Below are positions 8,401 to 61,075 of a stretch of DNA of 64,000 nt, piece after piece. The stretch's first letter is position 1. Every line of letters starts with the position of its first letter. A program made the position numbers and the translations under genes. The notes beneath the pieces were generated by a model. The model saw only the letters and a list, made by a program, of their open reading frames with translations, had not been told where the DNA came from and did not search any database. The stretch comes from Rebecca billardiae RCC1528 (taxonomy: Eukaryota > Protista > Haptophyta): NCBI GenBank assembly GCA_965240325.2, contig OZ251243.1:992001-1056000 (forward strand), read 5' to 3'.

Positions 8401-9194
8401 TGACCGCGTTCCGCGGTCCTTTTCCGTAGAACCAACGCAGTTCGGGGCCCGCGGCGCAGTGGTTGAGAATGAGACTGACGAGTCAGTCAGTCCGAGTCAG
8501 AAAGACAGTTCAGCCACTCTGAGAGGGAGAGTCAGACCCGAGACCGAGTCTCGGACTTGGCGCGAGTATGCGGGCGCGCACGGCCAAGGGTGGCATGGGA
8601 CACCAGCGGACGGGCCGCGCGGGGAAGCGGGGCGGCGCGCTCGCAGGGCGAGAGGCGCGGACGGGCCGCGCGGGGAAGCGGGGCGGCGGCGCGCGCAGGG
8701 CGAGAGGGCGAGAGGCGCCGCGCGGCGCCGGGCCGGCGCGTGCGCGCGTGCGGGCGCACCTGCTTCAGCTTGCAAGGTGCTCGCGCTGCGCCATGCGCTC
8801 GACGAAGGGCCGCTGGTCGCGAGCCGGCGCGTGCGCGCGAGCGGGCGCACCTGCTTGAGGTACTCGCCCTGCGCCATGCGCTCGACGACGGGCCGCTGGT
8901 CGCTCAGCCGGCACGCCTCGTGCCGGCAGAGCGAGAGCGCGCGCCACTGCAGACTGCTGGCCCGCCGGCCTGCCGGCTGCGCAGCCGCGCACCGAGACCG
9001 ACCGAGCGGAGCTCGGGGCGGTGGAACGAGGCGAGCGGCGCGTCGCGCCTGCCGCCGCGCGTGCGCGCCTGCTCCACCGCGCCGCCGTGCTCGCCCGCCG
9101 CCTCCTCCGCCGCGTCGGCCTCGAAGACGGCGGCTGCCAGCGGCAGGCCGTGAGCTGCGCGCGGCTCACTCACACTGTCTGTGAGTCCTCACGC

Positions 9195-10287
9195 TGCTGC
9201 CGGACCTCCGCGCCGCCGTCGACCGAGTTGAGGAGGAGCTCGCGCTCGGCGTCGAGGCGCGAGCTCGCGTGCTCGTGCTCGCCCTTCAGCCGCGCGAGCT
9301 CCGGGCGCATCCGGCTCATCAGCTCTGCCGCGCCGCTCGCTCGGCGGCGGCGGGCGGCGCGCTCTGCTCCGGTCGGCGAGCGACGAGCTCGCGTGCTCCG
9401 GACTCGGCTCGCCCTTGCGCGCTGCTCCTCGAGTGACGAACGCGCCCGCGGGCAGGTTGTTGCCCGTCGCCCCCGCCGCGATCTCGCCGCCCCCGCCGCG
9501 ATCTCGTCGCCCGCCGCCTCCTCCGCCGCGTCGGCCTCGAAGACGGCGGCTGCCAGCGGCAGGCTGAGCTGCGCGCGGCTCTGCCTGCCGGACCTCCGCG
9601 CCGCCGTCGACCGAGTTGAGGAGGAGCTCGCGCTCGGCGTCGAGGCGCGAGCTCGCGTGCTCGTGCTCGCCCTTCAGCCGCGCGAGCTCCGGGCGCATCC
9701 GGCTCATCAGCTCTGCCGCGCCGCTCGCTCGGCGGCGGCGGGCGGCGCGCTCTGCTCCGGTCGGCGAGCGACGAGCTCGCGTGCTCCGGACTCGGCTCGC
9801 CCTTGCGCGCTGCTCCTCGAGTGACGAACGCGCCCGCGGGCAGGTTGTTGCCCGTCGCCCCCGCCGCGATCTCGCCGCCCCCGCCGCGATCTCGTCGCCC
9901 GCCGCCTCCTCCGCCGCGTCGGCCTCGAAGACGGCGGCTGCCAGCGGCAGGCTGAGCTGCGCGCGGCTCTGCCTGCCGGACCTCCGCGCCGCCGTCGACC
10001 GAGTTGAGGAGGAGCTCGCGCTCGGCGTCGAGGCGCGAGCTCGCGTGCTCGTGCTCGCCCTTCAGCCGCGCGAGCTCCGGGCGCATCCGGCTCATCAGCT
10101 CTGCCGCGCCGCTCGCTCGGCGGCGGCGGGCGGCGCGCTCTGCTCCGGTCGGCGAGCGACGAGCTCGCGTGCTCCGGACTCGGATCGCCCTTGCGCGCTG
10201 CTCCTCGAGTGACGAACGCGCCCGCGGGCAGGTTGTTGCCCGTCGCCCCCGCCGCGATCTCGCCGCCCCCGCCGCGATCTCGTCGAG
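9195..10287. repeat. Tandem repeat, 388-bp unit, about 3 near-identical copies, inside element copy 1
   Basis: Same text at 9513/9901 and 9616/10004 (offset 388); the minus strand reads as a decayed coiled-coil fragment. Confidence 0.95.
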
Positions 10288-10374
10288 CATGTGTCCGTGG
10301 CGCGCGCCTGCGAGGTGACAGGCGGGCCGCGAGCTCAGCCTCGGGGAGAGCGGAGCGAGAGGGCGCTGAGACGC

Positions 10375-58778: not shown

Positions 58779-59422
58779 CGACGGGCGGCGGTGGTCGGCG
58801 GTCGGAGCAAGGCGGAGCCTTCTGCTCACACGGAGTTCCGACGGCGCGGAGCCTCGCAACGTCGCCAACGTCGCGCGACGGTCGCGTGCCGCCGTGCCGG
58901 CGTGACCGCGTTAGGTCAGAGTGCCGGTCGCGTCTATATCATGCAGCGCGCATCCTGGCTGATCCGCGCGGAGACGAACAGTACACTCATCCGATGATGA
59001 TGACCCGCCATATTGCCATTGGCATTGGCCGGCAACCCAAGTCAGTCCCGCCAGACTGCGTGCCGCGACCAATCGCCGGCGGTGCTTACCGACTAGCTCA
59101 GTAGCTGGCATTATTGACTGACGACCGGATGTCCCCAGCCTGCTGCGCTGTACCGATACGACTGCCGCGCCGCTTACTTACCGCTATTTTTGACAGCGGT
59201 GACAGCCCGAGCCGCGCACGACGGACGATCGACGCGATGACATCGCGCCATCATCATGCCCATCATCATCGCGATCAGTGTCGTAGTCAGCAGCAGATCT
59301 TATTCATATATATACATAGATCTACTATATATACGTACTTATTTATCGTCGCGCGCGCGATCATCACTCGTCGTCGTCGTCATCCGTCGGCGCCGCCGAA
59401 TCCGTCGCGACGAATATTATTA

Positions 59423-61075
59423 TGGCCCGCGGTGCAGGGCGGAGCGCGCAGCGTGGAGCCCGCTCCGTGGGCCCTAACCACGTTTCAAAAAGATCTTTGA
59501 TCAAGAAAAAAGGGACGGGGGACGATTTTCATGGCTGGAGGAGACCGAGTTTCGAATTTTGAGACCCTCTCTAACACGCATCACGGCCGAAAAAGGTCGC
59601 GCGCCCACGGCAAGTTCATAGTAAAGCGTGGAGTGACGCCCGTCCAAAAAACTTCACGCCCTTTAGGATCCCTAACGTAACGAACCGTTACAAGCGAGTT
59701 TTCCGGCCAATGAGATTGCAGCAAGGTCCAAGGAGCGATGACGTATCTAGATAGATAGAGATTGCCGCGAACCGATGTGACCATGTACGTCCCTTGAATG
59801 ATATGAATCAGTTGAATCAACTATTCAATCGCGCCGTGTCTGTATCAGGAGCCGACGAGGCAAGGGTCAGTAGCCGATGGGCCAACCTCGGCGAATCTCA
59901 ATACTATCTGACACCGGAAGCGGGAGCCGGGGCGCGCGGGCCCGCGTTTTGTACGCCACGGCTGCGGCGAGACCGCGAGAGGAGGCGAGCTGACGAGCGA
60001 CCGACGGGTGAGGACGGCGATGGGCAGGTGCGCGCGGCGAGTTGCGCCTGGAGCGCGCGGCTGCGGCGGGTCCCGACTGCCGTCGACATCGCGTTCGTGC
60101 CCCCGCTCACTCCGCGCGCCCCCGCCGCCCCGTGTCGATGCCTGCGCGCGGCCGCGCGCCGGTCGGCGCCGGGGCGCCCCGGCCGCGCCGCGGCAGCCGC
60201 CCTGTATTCGGGCTCTCGCAAGCTCGGGGGCAGCGGCGCCTGATGCCGGACTGATCGATCTCTGAGTCTTCGACTTCACCACGCGCCGCCCTTGCCATGC
60301 CTTTCCGGGGAGCGCCGACGATCCGAGTCCATCGTCGACGGTCGACTCTGAGCGAGGGCTACGCCTCGGAACTGAACGGTACTCTACGAGGAGGACGAGC
60401 TGCGCGGGCGACGGTGGTGCGTGACGTCCCCAGAGCTGGCTGTGCCTCTGCAACGCGTGCCGAGCCTGATTGAGGTGTGTCAGCCCGTGCACGCGCGGCG
60501 TGCGCGAACGATCCGTGACTGGTGCCCAGTCGCACCTCCGACCTCGGCACCGTGCTCCCTCGGGCTGTCAGCTCCGCGTGGCCTGGCGTGCACGTCGAGT
60601 TGCGCTCATGCGTCGATCACGCCTCGCGCCCGCCTGTCGGCCGTCGCGCAGGCGCTGGTCGAACCCTACTCGGACCAGTGCAAATCATCTAACTATCCTG
60701 GCGCTGCCGGTGCGCGGTGACCCGCGGCGGGACAGCGGTCAGTCAGCAGCAGCGGCCCGAACGAATCCGCGGCCCCGCACCGTGCTCCCTGGCTGTCAGC
60801 TTCGCGTGGCCTGGCGTGCACGTAGAGTCGCGCTCATGCGTCGATCACGCCTCGTCGCATCCGCCTGTATACAGGCGGCGCCGCGCCGGCGGCTGCGAAG
60901 TGCGCCGATGGGCCCGCGCCCCGGGCGCGGCGGGCGGCGGCGCGCCGCGCTGGAGTCTAGTTGTACGGGCATGCAACTCCGGGTCTGTCAATAGACGACT
61001 GCGATGGAGGGTGCACCGCCACCGCGGGCCCTGAACTACGTTCGTTCTACGGAAAAGGACCGCGGAACGCGGTCA
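59423..61075 (+). mobile_element. Non-autonomous element, copy 3 of the asymmetric-IR/3'-hairpin family (more diverged)
   Basis: 5' GGCCCGCGGTG (59424-59434) pairs with CACCGCGGGCC (61020-61030); hairpin GACCGCG-GAA-CGCGGTC at 61058-61074; A|T junctions; TA-rich tract downstream; internal duplication 60547-60626 / 60777-60854. Confidence 0.8.

Follow-up and report, generated by a model that had tools for sequence, protein, structure and literature searches.

The question raised by this locus is what kind of mobile element can keep its two ends, carry unrelated sequence between them and stop each time against a TA tract. Three copies of such an element, none of them encoding a protein, are found in the window, by which we mean the whole stretch of 64,000 nucleotides analysed here. 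The coordinates and strands given for them in a preliminary description of this DNA proved to be exact:

8401..10893, minus strand: copy c1, 2493 bp
30861..32155, minus strand: copy c2, 1295 bp
59423..61075, plus strand: copy c3, 1653 bp, the most divergent of the three

We think it probable that these copies are non-autonomous members of one rolling-circle family of the Helitron2/Helentron type (HLE2) in a haptophyte's nuclear genome, the host being a relative of the Pavlovales. It had been suggested that they may be undescribed. The family is indeed new, but the kind of element is already known, since targets other than TT are documented in the Helitron2 group.

The common 5' and 3' ends that had been proposed for the copies extend over about 270 nt and about 65 nt, respectively. 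A 41-mer of the 5' end and a 23-mer of the 3' end each occur three times in the window without any mismatch, with no occurrence expected. At the 5' end, c1 and c2 are 89% identical over 287 nt when a 26-nt duplication in c2 is counted, and 97% identical in ungapped blocks, while c1 and c3 are 93% identical over 148 nt and more weakly related from there to about nt 270. The 3' homology among the copies reaches 86-94% over 54-65 nt. The following features lie in the 5' blocks, the internal hairpin being near their inner end in c1:

10628..10893, minus strand: conserved 5' block of c1, about 266 nt, which stops just beyond the internal hairpin GTAACG-GTT-CGTTAC at 10640-10654
within the 5' block of c2: 26-nt tandem duplication
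59677..59691, plus strand: internal hairpin GTAACG-AAC-CGTTAC of c3, with the stem found in c1 and c2 and a reverse-complemented loop

The two ends occur together, in fixed orientation and around variable interiors, in all three copies, and no solo end is found in the window. No further copy or fragment was detected there either, by blastn self-comparison or with nhmmer profiles of both ends; the sequence AACGCGGTCA at 58912, considered as a remnant of the family, has neither the hairpin nor the TA flank. The interiors are unrelated, as had been noticed, apart from a short GAGATTGCCGC motif common to c1 and c3. About 60% of c1 consists of internal tandem repeats (388 bp x2.8, 126 bp x2, 83 bp x2.1 and 51 bp x2.3), and c3 contains an internal repeat of 91-94 nt with a spacing of 228-230 nt. 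The capture of gene fragments, also proposed at first, found no support, as Pfam returned nothing for the interior ORFs and these do not show the codon-position signature of host genes (GC2-low/GC3-high). The 50-codon ORF opened by the ATG of the junction was rejected as a real gene, being absent from all protein collections searched and frame-shifted in c2 and c3, and a SINE or tRNA-derived head was rejected as well, the window having no tRNA or Rfam hit. Long spurious ORFs cross the elements, for example one of 448 codons that begins within c3. Conservation is confined to cis signals. At the 5' end these form a block of about 270 nt led by a 50-nt hairpin, and at the 3' end one of about 65 nt, in which a spacer separates the subterminal inverted repeat from the GAA-loop hairpin. 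Weak nhmmer cross-hits relate the 3' block, as a direct repeat, to the descending arm of the 5' hairpin.

These signals are arranged asymmetrically. The 5' inverted repeat, of 9-11 nt, begins 1 nt from the terminus, and in all copies nt 2-12 of the element pair with CACCGCGGGCC, located 45-47 nt from the 3' terminus, in line with what the preliminary description had claimed. The match is perfect over 11 nt in c2 and c3 and over 9 nt in c1 (12 nt with one mismatch), and one as good is found in at most 0.4% of random 100-nt windows, most of which are the elements themselves. The 3' hairpin, for which a 7-bp stem and a GAA loop ending 1 nt short of the terminus had been described, is identical in the three copies (GACCGCG-GAA-CGCGGTC, then A), with a perfect stem. 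The hairpin stems are invariant between copies and thus show no covariation, a point that weighs against the HLE2 reading. A second hairpin, overlooked at first, is found at the 5' terminus, where it covers about 50 nt (element nt 2-52) and is closed by the 5' inverted repeat. Its folding energy is -21 to -25 kcal/mol (z -2.75 to -3.5), and none of 200 shuffles was as stable. In c1, the outer stem is formed by the pairing of the 5' inverted repeat GGCCCGCGGTG with CACC(A)GCGGGCC, and in c3 the descending arm is altered (TCC-GTGGGCC), the stem being weaker but not abolished. The corresponding features are the following:

8402..8418, minus strand: 3' hairpin of c1, 1 nt from the terminus
8446..8457, minus strand: 3' subterminal inverted repeat of c1, GCGCCGCGGGCC, 45 nt from the terminus, at the inner limit of the conserved 3' block
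10842..10892, minus strand: 5'-terminal hairpin of c1, element nt 2-52, -24.8 kcal/mol, z -3.4, 0 of 200 shuffles as stable
30862..30878, minus strand: 3' hairpin of c2, same as that of c1
30908..30918, minus strand: 3' subterminal inverted repeat of c2, CACCGCGGGCC, 47 nt from the terminus
32104..32154, minus strand: 5'-terminal hairpin of c2, sequence as in c1, -24.9 kcal/mol, z -3.5
59424..59473, plus strand: 5'-terminal hairpin of c3, -20.9 kcal/mol, z -2.75
61020..61030, plus strand: 3' subterminal inverted repeat of c3, CACCGCGGGCC, 45 nt from the terminus
61058..61074, plus strand: 3' hairpin of c3, same as that of c1

By definition, a Helitron2 element begins with a T and has an asymmetric inverted repeat of 8-15 nt within 0-2 nt of its 5' terminus; the partner of this repeat is subterminal at the 3' end, with a hairpin downstream of it, and the 5' repeat itself takes part in a 5' hairpin (PMC3627910). 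Every one of these features is present here. Among the marks of HLE2, the same is true of the asymmetric repeats of 8-16 nt (the 5' one 0-4 nt and the 3' one 20-60 nt from the end) and of a 5' hairpin using part or all of the 5' inverted repeat. An autonomous HLE2 partner would have the same ends and encode RepHel, together with an AP endonuclease in Helentrons. The Helitron2/Helentron end anatomy recognised in the preliminary description is thus strengthened by the 5' hairpin on the 5' repeat and by the 45-nt offset, which falls inside the published ranges. Judging from the published literature, the combination of an asymmetric repeat, a 5' hairpin and a 3' hairpin appears to be specific to Helitron2/Helentron.

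The Helitron2 elements of Chlamydomonas reinhardtii (Helitron-1_CRe, Helitron-1N1/1N2_CRe, CRe-1/2/3; Bao and Jurka 2013, PMC3627910) share with the present family the asymmetric terminal inverted repeats, the 5' hairpin on the 5' repeat, the 3' hairpin after the 3' repeat and the 5' T. Their non-autonomous forms resemble the autonomous partner over about 200 nt at the 5' end and about 50 nt at the 3' end, around unrelated interiors, which is the asymmetry seen here, and they occasionally show flanking duplications of variable length with filler, as at c1. However, these elements of a green alga insert after TTTT rather than at the edges of TA tracts, their 3' repeat lies 20-30 nt from the end instead of 45 nt, and some carry Fanzor genes, while no coding cargo was seen here. 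FoHeli1 and FoHeli2, of the Helitron2 type in Fusarium oxysporum (PMC5148889), also have hairpins with GAA loops at both termini, together with a 12-nt asymmetric repeat and a 3' repeat 38-51 nt from the 3' terminus, a range that includes our 45-47 nt. Their site is TNAT|A and not TT, and the 5' flanks of our three copies (TTAT, TGAT and TTAT when the shared T is assigned to the flank) are comparable. [quoted passage not shown] Finally, the Helentron-derived HINEs/DINE-1 (PMC4067079) have partly palindromic subterminal inverted repeats, 2-4 nt inside the 5' terminus and 38-60 nt inside the 3' terminus, a 3' stem-loop, and internal microsatellites or tandem repeats that make up to half of the element, much like the arrays of c1. 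They belong to animals, have partners with an AP-endonuclease domain, and insert in TT with T runs at the boundary; their palindrome lies 8-35 nt from the 3' end, where the present one is at 1 nt, and this distance counts against the HLE2 reading.

We then come to the target. All six junctions read A|TGG...TCA|T, as first reported, which can also be expressed as T-N-A^T, and the association with TA tracts was confirmed, the 3' end abutting one in each of the three copies:

8371..8400, no strand: (TA)15 tract at the 3' end of c1, abutting the terminus
10902..10917, plus strand: 16-nt direct repeat GGCCGTATATATATAT flanking c1, with its twin at 8366-8381 and an 8-nt filler between the 10902..10917 copy and the 5' terminus
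30757..30860, no strand: TA tract at the 3' end of c2, (TA)39, then TGTATGTATG, then (TA)9, or about (TA)52 with interruptions
61076..61127, no strand: imperfect TA tract at the 3' end of c3, about 50 nt

HLE2 elements insert in a set orientation between T and T, with variants after TTTT or at TNAT|A, and leave no target-site duplication. Here the exact boundary can be shifted by one base to either side. The junction letters, ..TNA-T-GGCCC....GGTC-A-T-ATA, are compatible with A|T, T|T or T|A, so that an A|T site, a canonical T|T site (the element being GGCCC...GGTCA) and a Fusarium-like TNAT|A site would all fit. The contrast formerly drawn with Helitron2 elements inserting at TT may then be illusory, as the letters equally permit T|T or TNAT|A, even though the A|T reading fits too. 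Because the three readings differ only in the number of TA units within a microsatellite, the comparison with empty sites is confounded. None was found: the sole independent Logan contig over a junction, reached through the gene neighbouring c3, is an occupied allele that spans the TA tract and ends 19 nt inside the element. In a pure (TA)n, the base at -3 is A and not T, so only the edge of a tract supplies T-N-A^T; this explains why the copies are always at an edge, with the 3' end towards the tract. The target motif and this edge rule rest on three copies and are thinly sampled. It counts against our reading that one long TA tract is unoccupied, although its TAA|TA edge at 10994 would suit the family. 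In its favour, a TIR element elsewhere in the window lies inside a TA tract, with TA on both sides, while the three copies of the family are all at edges. The 16-nt direct repeat flanking c1 is not predicted by a clean rolling-circle insertion and counts against it. A TA(T)CGG repeat flanking c2 was too short to be claimed as a duplication.

The tract could also be something other than the target, if it were carried by the element through 3' read-through of a donor tract, or generated by an expansion seeded by the terminal TCATA, the true target lying beyond it. It is always found 3' of the element, the side on which Helitron-type elements run past their terminator, its length varies widely between copies and by one TA unit between assemblies, CGG comes first on the far side of the tract in both c1 and c2, and the c1 tract plus CGGCC is duplicated on the 5' side. 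Yet the far-side flanks have only this CGG in common, c3 being different, and the window contains copy-free TA tracts (10996-11103, 25958 and 3503). Furthermore, the unrelated TIR element also uses TA tracts, and the targeting of TA microsatellites is documented for the unrelated DNA transposons MuTAnT, TAFT and Micron (PMC4486113). A tract brought or made by the element thus seems fairly unlikely to us.

We hold as very improbable that the family moves by cut and paste, as a DDE element with short imperfect TIRs inserting into TA dinucleotides and duplicating them (Tc1/mariner-, Stowaway- or ISL2EU-like). The TA...TA flanks of c1 and c3, the TIR element that uses TA tracts in the same window, and a weak inversion of the extreme termini (TGGCCCGCGGTGC against TGACC-GCGTTCC, the reverse complement of the 3' end, 9/13 with one gap) would suit such an element. 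However, TA-duplicating families have TIRs at their exact ends and a constant 2-bp duplication, and c2 is flanked by GA...TA; the GA on its 5' side argues against a TA target-site duplication, in a copy that is young since its ends are 97% identical to those of c1. The strong inverted repeat is asymmetric in all copies, 1 nt from one end and 45 nt from the other, conservation extends much further at the 5' end (about 270 nt) than at the 3' end (65 nt), and a TA-duplicating insertion into (TA)n is expected to leave repeats on both sides, where the three copies have them on the 3' side only.

Another single-strand HUH transposon, driven by a Replitron-type Y1 Rep, an IS200/IS605- or IS91-like enzyme or an undescribed Rep instead of RepHel, would have the general HUH traits seen here: a hairpin at each end, insertion in a set orientation beside a short motif, and the lack of a clear TSD. 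Replitron candidates are reported in haptophytes, a CGCGGT direct repeat lies close to each terminus (at nt 6-11 and, counted from the 3' end, at 3-8), and RepHel is not seen in the window. Indeed, as already stated in the preliminary description, the window holds no autonomous partner, which also counts against the HLE2 reading: its 20 longest ORFs contain no Rep or helicase domain, and no P-loop GxxGxGK[ST] occurs in any of its frames. Nevertheless, the definition of Replitrons calls for short direct repeats that coincide, or nearly so, with the exact termini, and no asymmetric inverted repeats have been reported in them, while TGGCCC and GGTCA are not direct repeats, and the only direct repeat found, the internal CGCGGT, is a by-product of the palindromic CCGCGG core. 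The asymmetric repeat with both hairpins, specific in the literature to Helitron2/Helentron, makes this origin highly unlikely.

Exact scans with a 5' 24-mer and a 3' 22-mer gave no match in JGI metagenome contigs, and the 5' 24-mer none in IMG/VR or in GTDB genomes; the single IMG/VR match of a 3' 19-mer has no inverted repeat and no TA flank and was judged to be due to chance. On the protein side, the 5'-block pseudo-ORFs and the interior ORFs had no exact match among 15 billion proteins, an antisense 51-aa ORF none in a word-index search, and the 50-aa junction ORF no phmmer match among 1.8 billion representatives. Looking up guessed products of the flanking genes gave no further copy, empty site or partner.

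Two further known types do not match. Canonical Helitrons (Helitron1) share with our copies a 3' hairpin, variable cargo between conserved ends and, possibly, A|T insertion without duplication, but they start with TC, end with CTRR and have only one hairpin, on the 3' side and about 11 nt from the end; they have no terminal inverted repeats, asymmetric ones included, and no 5' hairpin, unlike the TGG.../...GGTCA elements described here. The insertions of MuTAnT (Medicago), TAFT (maize) and Micron (rice) are flanked by (TA)n, as here, a choice interpreted as safe-haven targeting (PMC4486113), but these are Mutator-like or unclassified cut-and-paste elements with true TIRs and TA-repeat duplications on both sides (long TIRs and 9 bp for the MuTAnT type), whereas our copies have Helitron2-like ends, no long TIRs and a tract on the 3' side only.

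Coming back to a Helitron2/Helentron-type family, we infer that it is mobilised by an HUH enzyme. A RepHel encoded elsewhere (HUH-Y2 plus a Pif1-like helicase) would nick the top strand at the left end (T-N-A^T), unwind the element 5' to 3', recognise the 3' repeat and hairpin, nick at TCA^T and join the ends. The two inverted repeats are then predicted to pair, which would put the joint at the foot of a stem. In folds of the joined ends, the 3' repeat pairs with the 5' repeat in the three copies; these folds reach -37 to -42 kcal/mol, where the two ends folded separately give -36 to -39 kcal/mol. The strand would then be transferred to a T-N-A^T site where a TA tract begins. Such tracts may be preferred as the easiest-melting DNA in a genome of 68% GC, and also because a self-complementary tract may form a hairpin whose 5' foot would mimic the element's own left end. 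It is conceivable, although quite unlikely, that the T-N-A^T nicked by the transposase is the one at the 5' foot of a hairpin in the DNA and that the target is picked by structural mimicry, the (TA)n hairpin imitating the 5'-terminal hairpin of the element.

Helitron2/Helentron elements are little documented beyond animals, fungi, oomycetes, green algae and plants, and we found no description of a haptophyte one in the literature examined. A curated family with sharp ends would help the annotation of GC-rich haptophyte genomes, in which spurious ORFs cross the elements. If the T-N-A^T rule at the edges of TA tracts is true genome-wide, it would provide a simple target rule for a group in which target choice is poorly understood, and rolling-circle elements would join unrelated transposons in using TA microsatellites as landing pads. 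If hairpin mimicry were true, it would be the first structural rule of target choice in Helitron2-type elements, and would explain the disparate targets reported for them (TT, TTTT|T, TNAT|A and TA-tract edges).

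The three copies of the family, which encode no protein of their own, lie at the coordinates and on the strands where the preliminary description had placed them:

8401-10893, (-) strand: element copy c1
30861-32155, (-) strand: element copy c2
59423-61075, (+) strand: element copy c3

String counts and alignments also bear out that common ends surround unrelated interiors. An exact 41-nt string at the 5' end and an exact 23-nt string at the 3' end are each found three times in the window with 0 mismatches, and neither occurs in shuffled sequence. The 5' homology extends over ~270 nt. 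In this block, c1 and c2 show 97% identity in ungapped blocks, a 26-nt tandem duplication being private to c2, and c3 shows 93% identity over the first 148 nt, beyond which it is diverged and alignable as far as a conserved internal hairpin. The 3' homology covers 54-65 nt (86-94% identity), and its inner limit is the exact start of the subterminal inverted repeat. The sole exception to the unrelatedness of the interiors is a short GAGATTGCCGC motif common to c1 and c3, and most of c1 is made up of tandemly repeated units in its interior (388 bp x2.8 and 126 bp x2 among them). Neither a microsatellite-masked self-blastn nor nhmmer profiles of the two ends revealed a fourth copy, a solo end or a fragment in the window.

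The terminal anatomy is the same in all copies, with the asymmetric inverted repeat and the GAA-loop 3' hairpin that had been recognized from the sequence. The 5' repeat (GGCCCGCGGTG, element nt 2-12) has its complement in CACCGCGGGCC, 45-47 nt away from the 3' terminus; c2 and c3 match over 11 nt, and c1 over 9 nt without a mismatch or 12 nt with one. The order at the 3' end is the inverted repeat, a spacer, the hairpin GACCGCG-GAA-CGCGGTC, and then one A. A feature that had been missed is that the 5' repeat has a second partner, CACC(A)GCGGGCC (nt 41-52), with which it closes a 50-nt 5'-terminal hairpin (-21 to -25 kcal/mol, z -2.75 to -3.5; 0/200 shuffles fold as well). The 3' repeat and the next ~15 nt are a direct-repeat relative of the descending arm of this hairpin, as seen from weak reciprocal nhmmer hits. 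When the last 62 nt were fused to the first 58 nt, mimicking a circular or tandem intermediate, the two repeats paired with each other in the minimum-energy fold of 3/3 copies, and the A|T joint came to lie at the base of the resulting stem. The energies of these folds are -37 to -42 kcal/mol; the two ends give -36 to -39 kcal/mol when folded separately. A second hairpin, GTAACG-NNN-CGTTAC, is found at the inner edge of the 5' block (element nt ~240-280), its stem being conserved at the following positions:

10640-10654: internal hairpin of c1
31875-31889: internal hairpin of c2
59677-59691: internal hairpin of c3

Its loop is GTT in c1 and c2, and the reverse complement AAC in c3, with the stem kept. 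As a separate observation, AACGCGGTCATA, which is the family's last 10 nt plus TA, stands at 8312-8323 (+), 78 nt beyond the c1 3' end, in the orientation opposite to c1 and without the remainder of the hairpin; the expected count of such 10-mers in the window is about 0.1, and this one is either a remnant or chance.

These ends can be compared to those of several known elements. Helitron2 elements have asymmetric terminal inverted repeats of 8-15 nt, the 5' one 0-2 nt from the end, plus a 5' T; their 5' repeat forms a hairpin with downstream bases, and their 3' repeat is subterminal, upstream of a hairpin (Bao & Jurka, PMC3627910). This definition fits c1-c3 in the asymmetric repeats, the 5' hairpin and the 3' hairpin. 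In the FoHeli1/2 elements of Fusarium oxysporum, which are of Helitron2 type, the 3' repeat is separated from the end by 38-51 nt and the hairpins have GAA loops (PMC5148889); our copies, with their offset of 45-47 nt and their GAA-loop 3' hairpin, are similar. The FoHeli boundary TNAT|A is one of three that the junction letters allow. In HINEs (Helentron-derived non-autonomous elements), the 3' repeat is 38-60 nt from the end, a range that includes ours, and tandem repeats often occupy up to half of the length (PMC4067079), which recalls c1. Finally, the unequal conserved ends (~270 and ~65 nt here) resemble those of the Chlamydomonas non-autonomous Helitron2, which have in common with the autonomous element ~200 nt at the 5' end and ~50 nt at the 3' end (PMC3627910). 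Since these definitions fit, we file the family on structure as a probable non-autonomous member of HLE2, the group of Helitron2 and Helentron rolling-circle transposons; the likeness to these ends had been noticed from the outset, and the 5' hairpin adds to it. No Rep or helicase domain was found among the 20 longest ORFs of the window, no GxxGxGK[ST] P-loop in any of its frames, and no further copy in end searches of JGI metagenome contigs, IMG/VR, GTDB and protein collections.

The capture of gene fragments, which had been proposed for the interiors, is not borne out. Ten interior ORFs gave no Pfam match at E 0.1 or below, 0 were found in the protein collection, and their GC content hardly varies across the codon positions (about 0.7/0.7/0.7), with host genes in the window at 0.55-0.61 for GC2 and 0.79-0.91 for GC3. 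The flanking A and the element's TG make an ATG that opens an ORF of 50 codons in c1 (10745-10894, (-) strand) and of 76 codons in c2, and that is out of frame in c3; none of the protein collections searched contains it, and we judged it spurious as a gene.

The window is eukaryotic DNA with a GC content of 68% and few introns, and it has genes for MFS, Arm-BTB, MYND, DDX49, Patched-like, DNAAF5-like, ESCO-like, fatty-acid desaturase and Arp2/3 p34 products. The DDX49 product has 65% identity to that of Diacronema lutheri, and the gene neighbouring c3 has a named relative in Pavlovales sp. CCMP2436, so the host is a haptophyte related to Pavlovales. Short Logan contigs from runs ERR14847148, ERR14847150 and ERR14847151 also carry window products, with 99.8-99.9% nucleotide identity. 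The GC3 map shows each copy flanked by a pair of convergent genes, whose 3' ends face it. Dinucleotide repeats abound in the spacers between such genes, and long microsatellites include (AC)n at 32185-32275, 29 nt from the c2 5' end, and (CT)n at 25695-25835. Other mobile elements share the locus. One is a foldback-type element of 2318 bp (38649-40966) that lies 54 nt upstream of the DNAAF5-like gene. Its terminal inverted repeats are 1027 nt long (99.6-100%), its outer ends bear paired small palindromes, and its 275-aa ORFs have no Pfam hit; the 9-bp duplication, GTGGCTGGG, is a mark of Mutator-like elements. Another, at 19793-23274, is an LTR element (322-nt LTRs, 99.7%, TG..CA; 5-bp duplication CATAT; polypurine tract; GC 53-60% in surroundings of 68%). 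Its only ORF, of 856 aa, is gag-like in having a CCHC zinc knuckle at the C terminus, and pol is absent, so the element is a non-autonomous LTR retroelement.

The left flanks read ..ATTA, ..TTGA and ..ATTA in c1, c2 and c3, and the right flanks TATATA.., TATATA.. and TAATATA.., so that T-N-A^T can stand for all six nick sites, with TTA^T in c1 and c3 and TGA^T in c2 at the left end, and TCA^T in every copy at the right end. The letters of the A|T junctions first reported are right, but letters shared across the junctions allow three readings of the exact boundary, of which A|T is only one. With A|T, the element begins with T, as in Helitron2 elements; with T|T, it is GGCCC...GGTCA in the canonical HLE2 target; with TNAT|A, it is GGCCC...GGTC, in a target identical to that of FoHeli1/2. 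Since only their count of TA units would distinguish the empty sites that the three readings predict, those at TA tracts are uninformative, and copies such as c2, with its GA 5' flank, are the usable ones. An independent short-read Logan contig (run ERR14847148; 99.9% match to 61057-63429) crosses the TA tract by c3, with one TA unit different, and stops 19 nt inside c3, so it represents the occupied allele and not an empty site; an end at this place is expected where a repeat breaks the de Bruijn graph.

TA-rich tracts make up ~0.6% of the window, and 3/3 element 3' ends abut one, as had been claimed. None of the copies is inside a tract; all are at its extreme edge, with a non-TA 5' flank. 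This position follows from the T at -3, since pure (TA)n has an A there and the motif exists only where the tract begins. Vacant T-N-A|(TA)n sites are found in the window at one long tract (10994) and at several short ones. In contrast to this edge position, an unrelated 1.8-kb element (11104-12920; 27/28-nt terminal inverted repeats, GGCTCTGGCTCCGGTTGACCCCTGCCAG; a 313-aa ORF with no Pfam hit) lies inside a TA tract, with (AT)54 on its left and (AT)5 on its right, so TA tracts are landing pads for a second, unrelated transposon. This element, c1 and the large TA tract are bracketed by inverted paralogous genes of ~233 aa (7439-8136, (+), and 13261-13958, (-); 92% nucleotide identity; no Pfam hit). 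A 16-nt direct repeat, GGCCGTATATATATAT, flanks c1 (8366-8381 and 10902-10917), with 8 nt of filler, similar to the element's own first bases, between its 5'-side copy and the c1 terminus. This single case may be a variable duplication with filler, by analogy with those of the Chlamydomonas reinhardtii CRe elements (PMC3627910).

The tract could also be carried or generated by the element, which is compatible with HLE2 and would account for its 3' side and for the repeat around c1; we consider this unlikely, given that TA tracts without the family exist in the window and that another transposon uses them. It is improbable that we are dealing with a cut-and-paste element that duplicates TA: the TA...TA flanks of c1 and c3 and the 9/13 match of the exact ends would suit it, but the GA...TA flanks of c2 argue against a TA duplication, as do the asymmetry of the ends and the TA tract on one side only against such an element. 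Another HUH group such as Replitrons is equally improbable, their terminal direct repeats being absent from c1-c3.

For the HLE2 assignment, established HUH/RepHel knowledge (RepHel being the HUH Rep and Pif1-like helicase transposase) and the Bao & Jurka model suggest a course of transposition. The copies have conserved cis elements, uniform T-N-A^T junctions, an edge position and alternative pairings of the 5' repeat. The left T-N-A^T would be nicked and the strand unwound 5' to 3', until arrival at the 3' repeat and hairpin would bring termination; the element ends would then be joined, and the joined strand transferred into a T-N-A^T site. We may speculate that TA tracts are favoured as easily melted DNA within a genome of 68% GC, and that such a tract, being self-complementary, can also present a hairpin whose 5' foot mimics the element's left end.

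The kind of element is already known, and so are non-TT targets within HLE2, so the suggestion that it may be undescribed holds for the family only. TA-microsatellite targeting is known in other superfamilies, and a Helitron-like family disrupting (GAAA)n has been cited (PMC4486113). The novelty lies in the family, in the lineage that hosts it, and in the rule of insertion at tract edges, which is drawn from three copies, with its T-N-A^T explanation.
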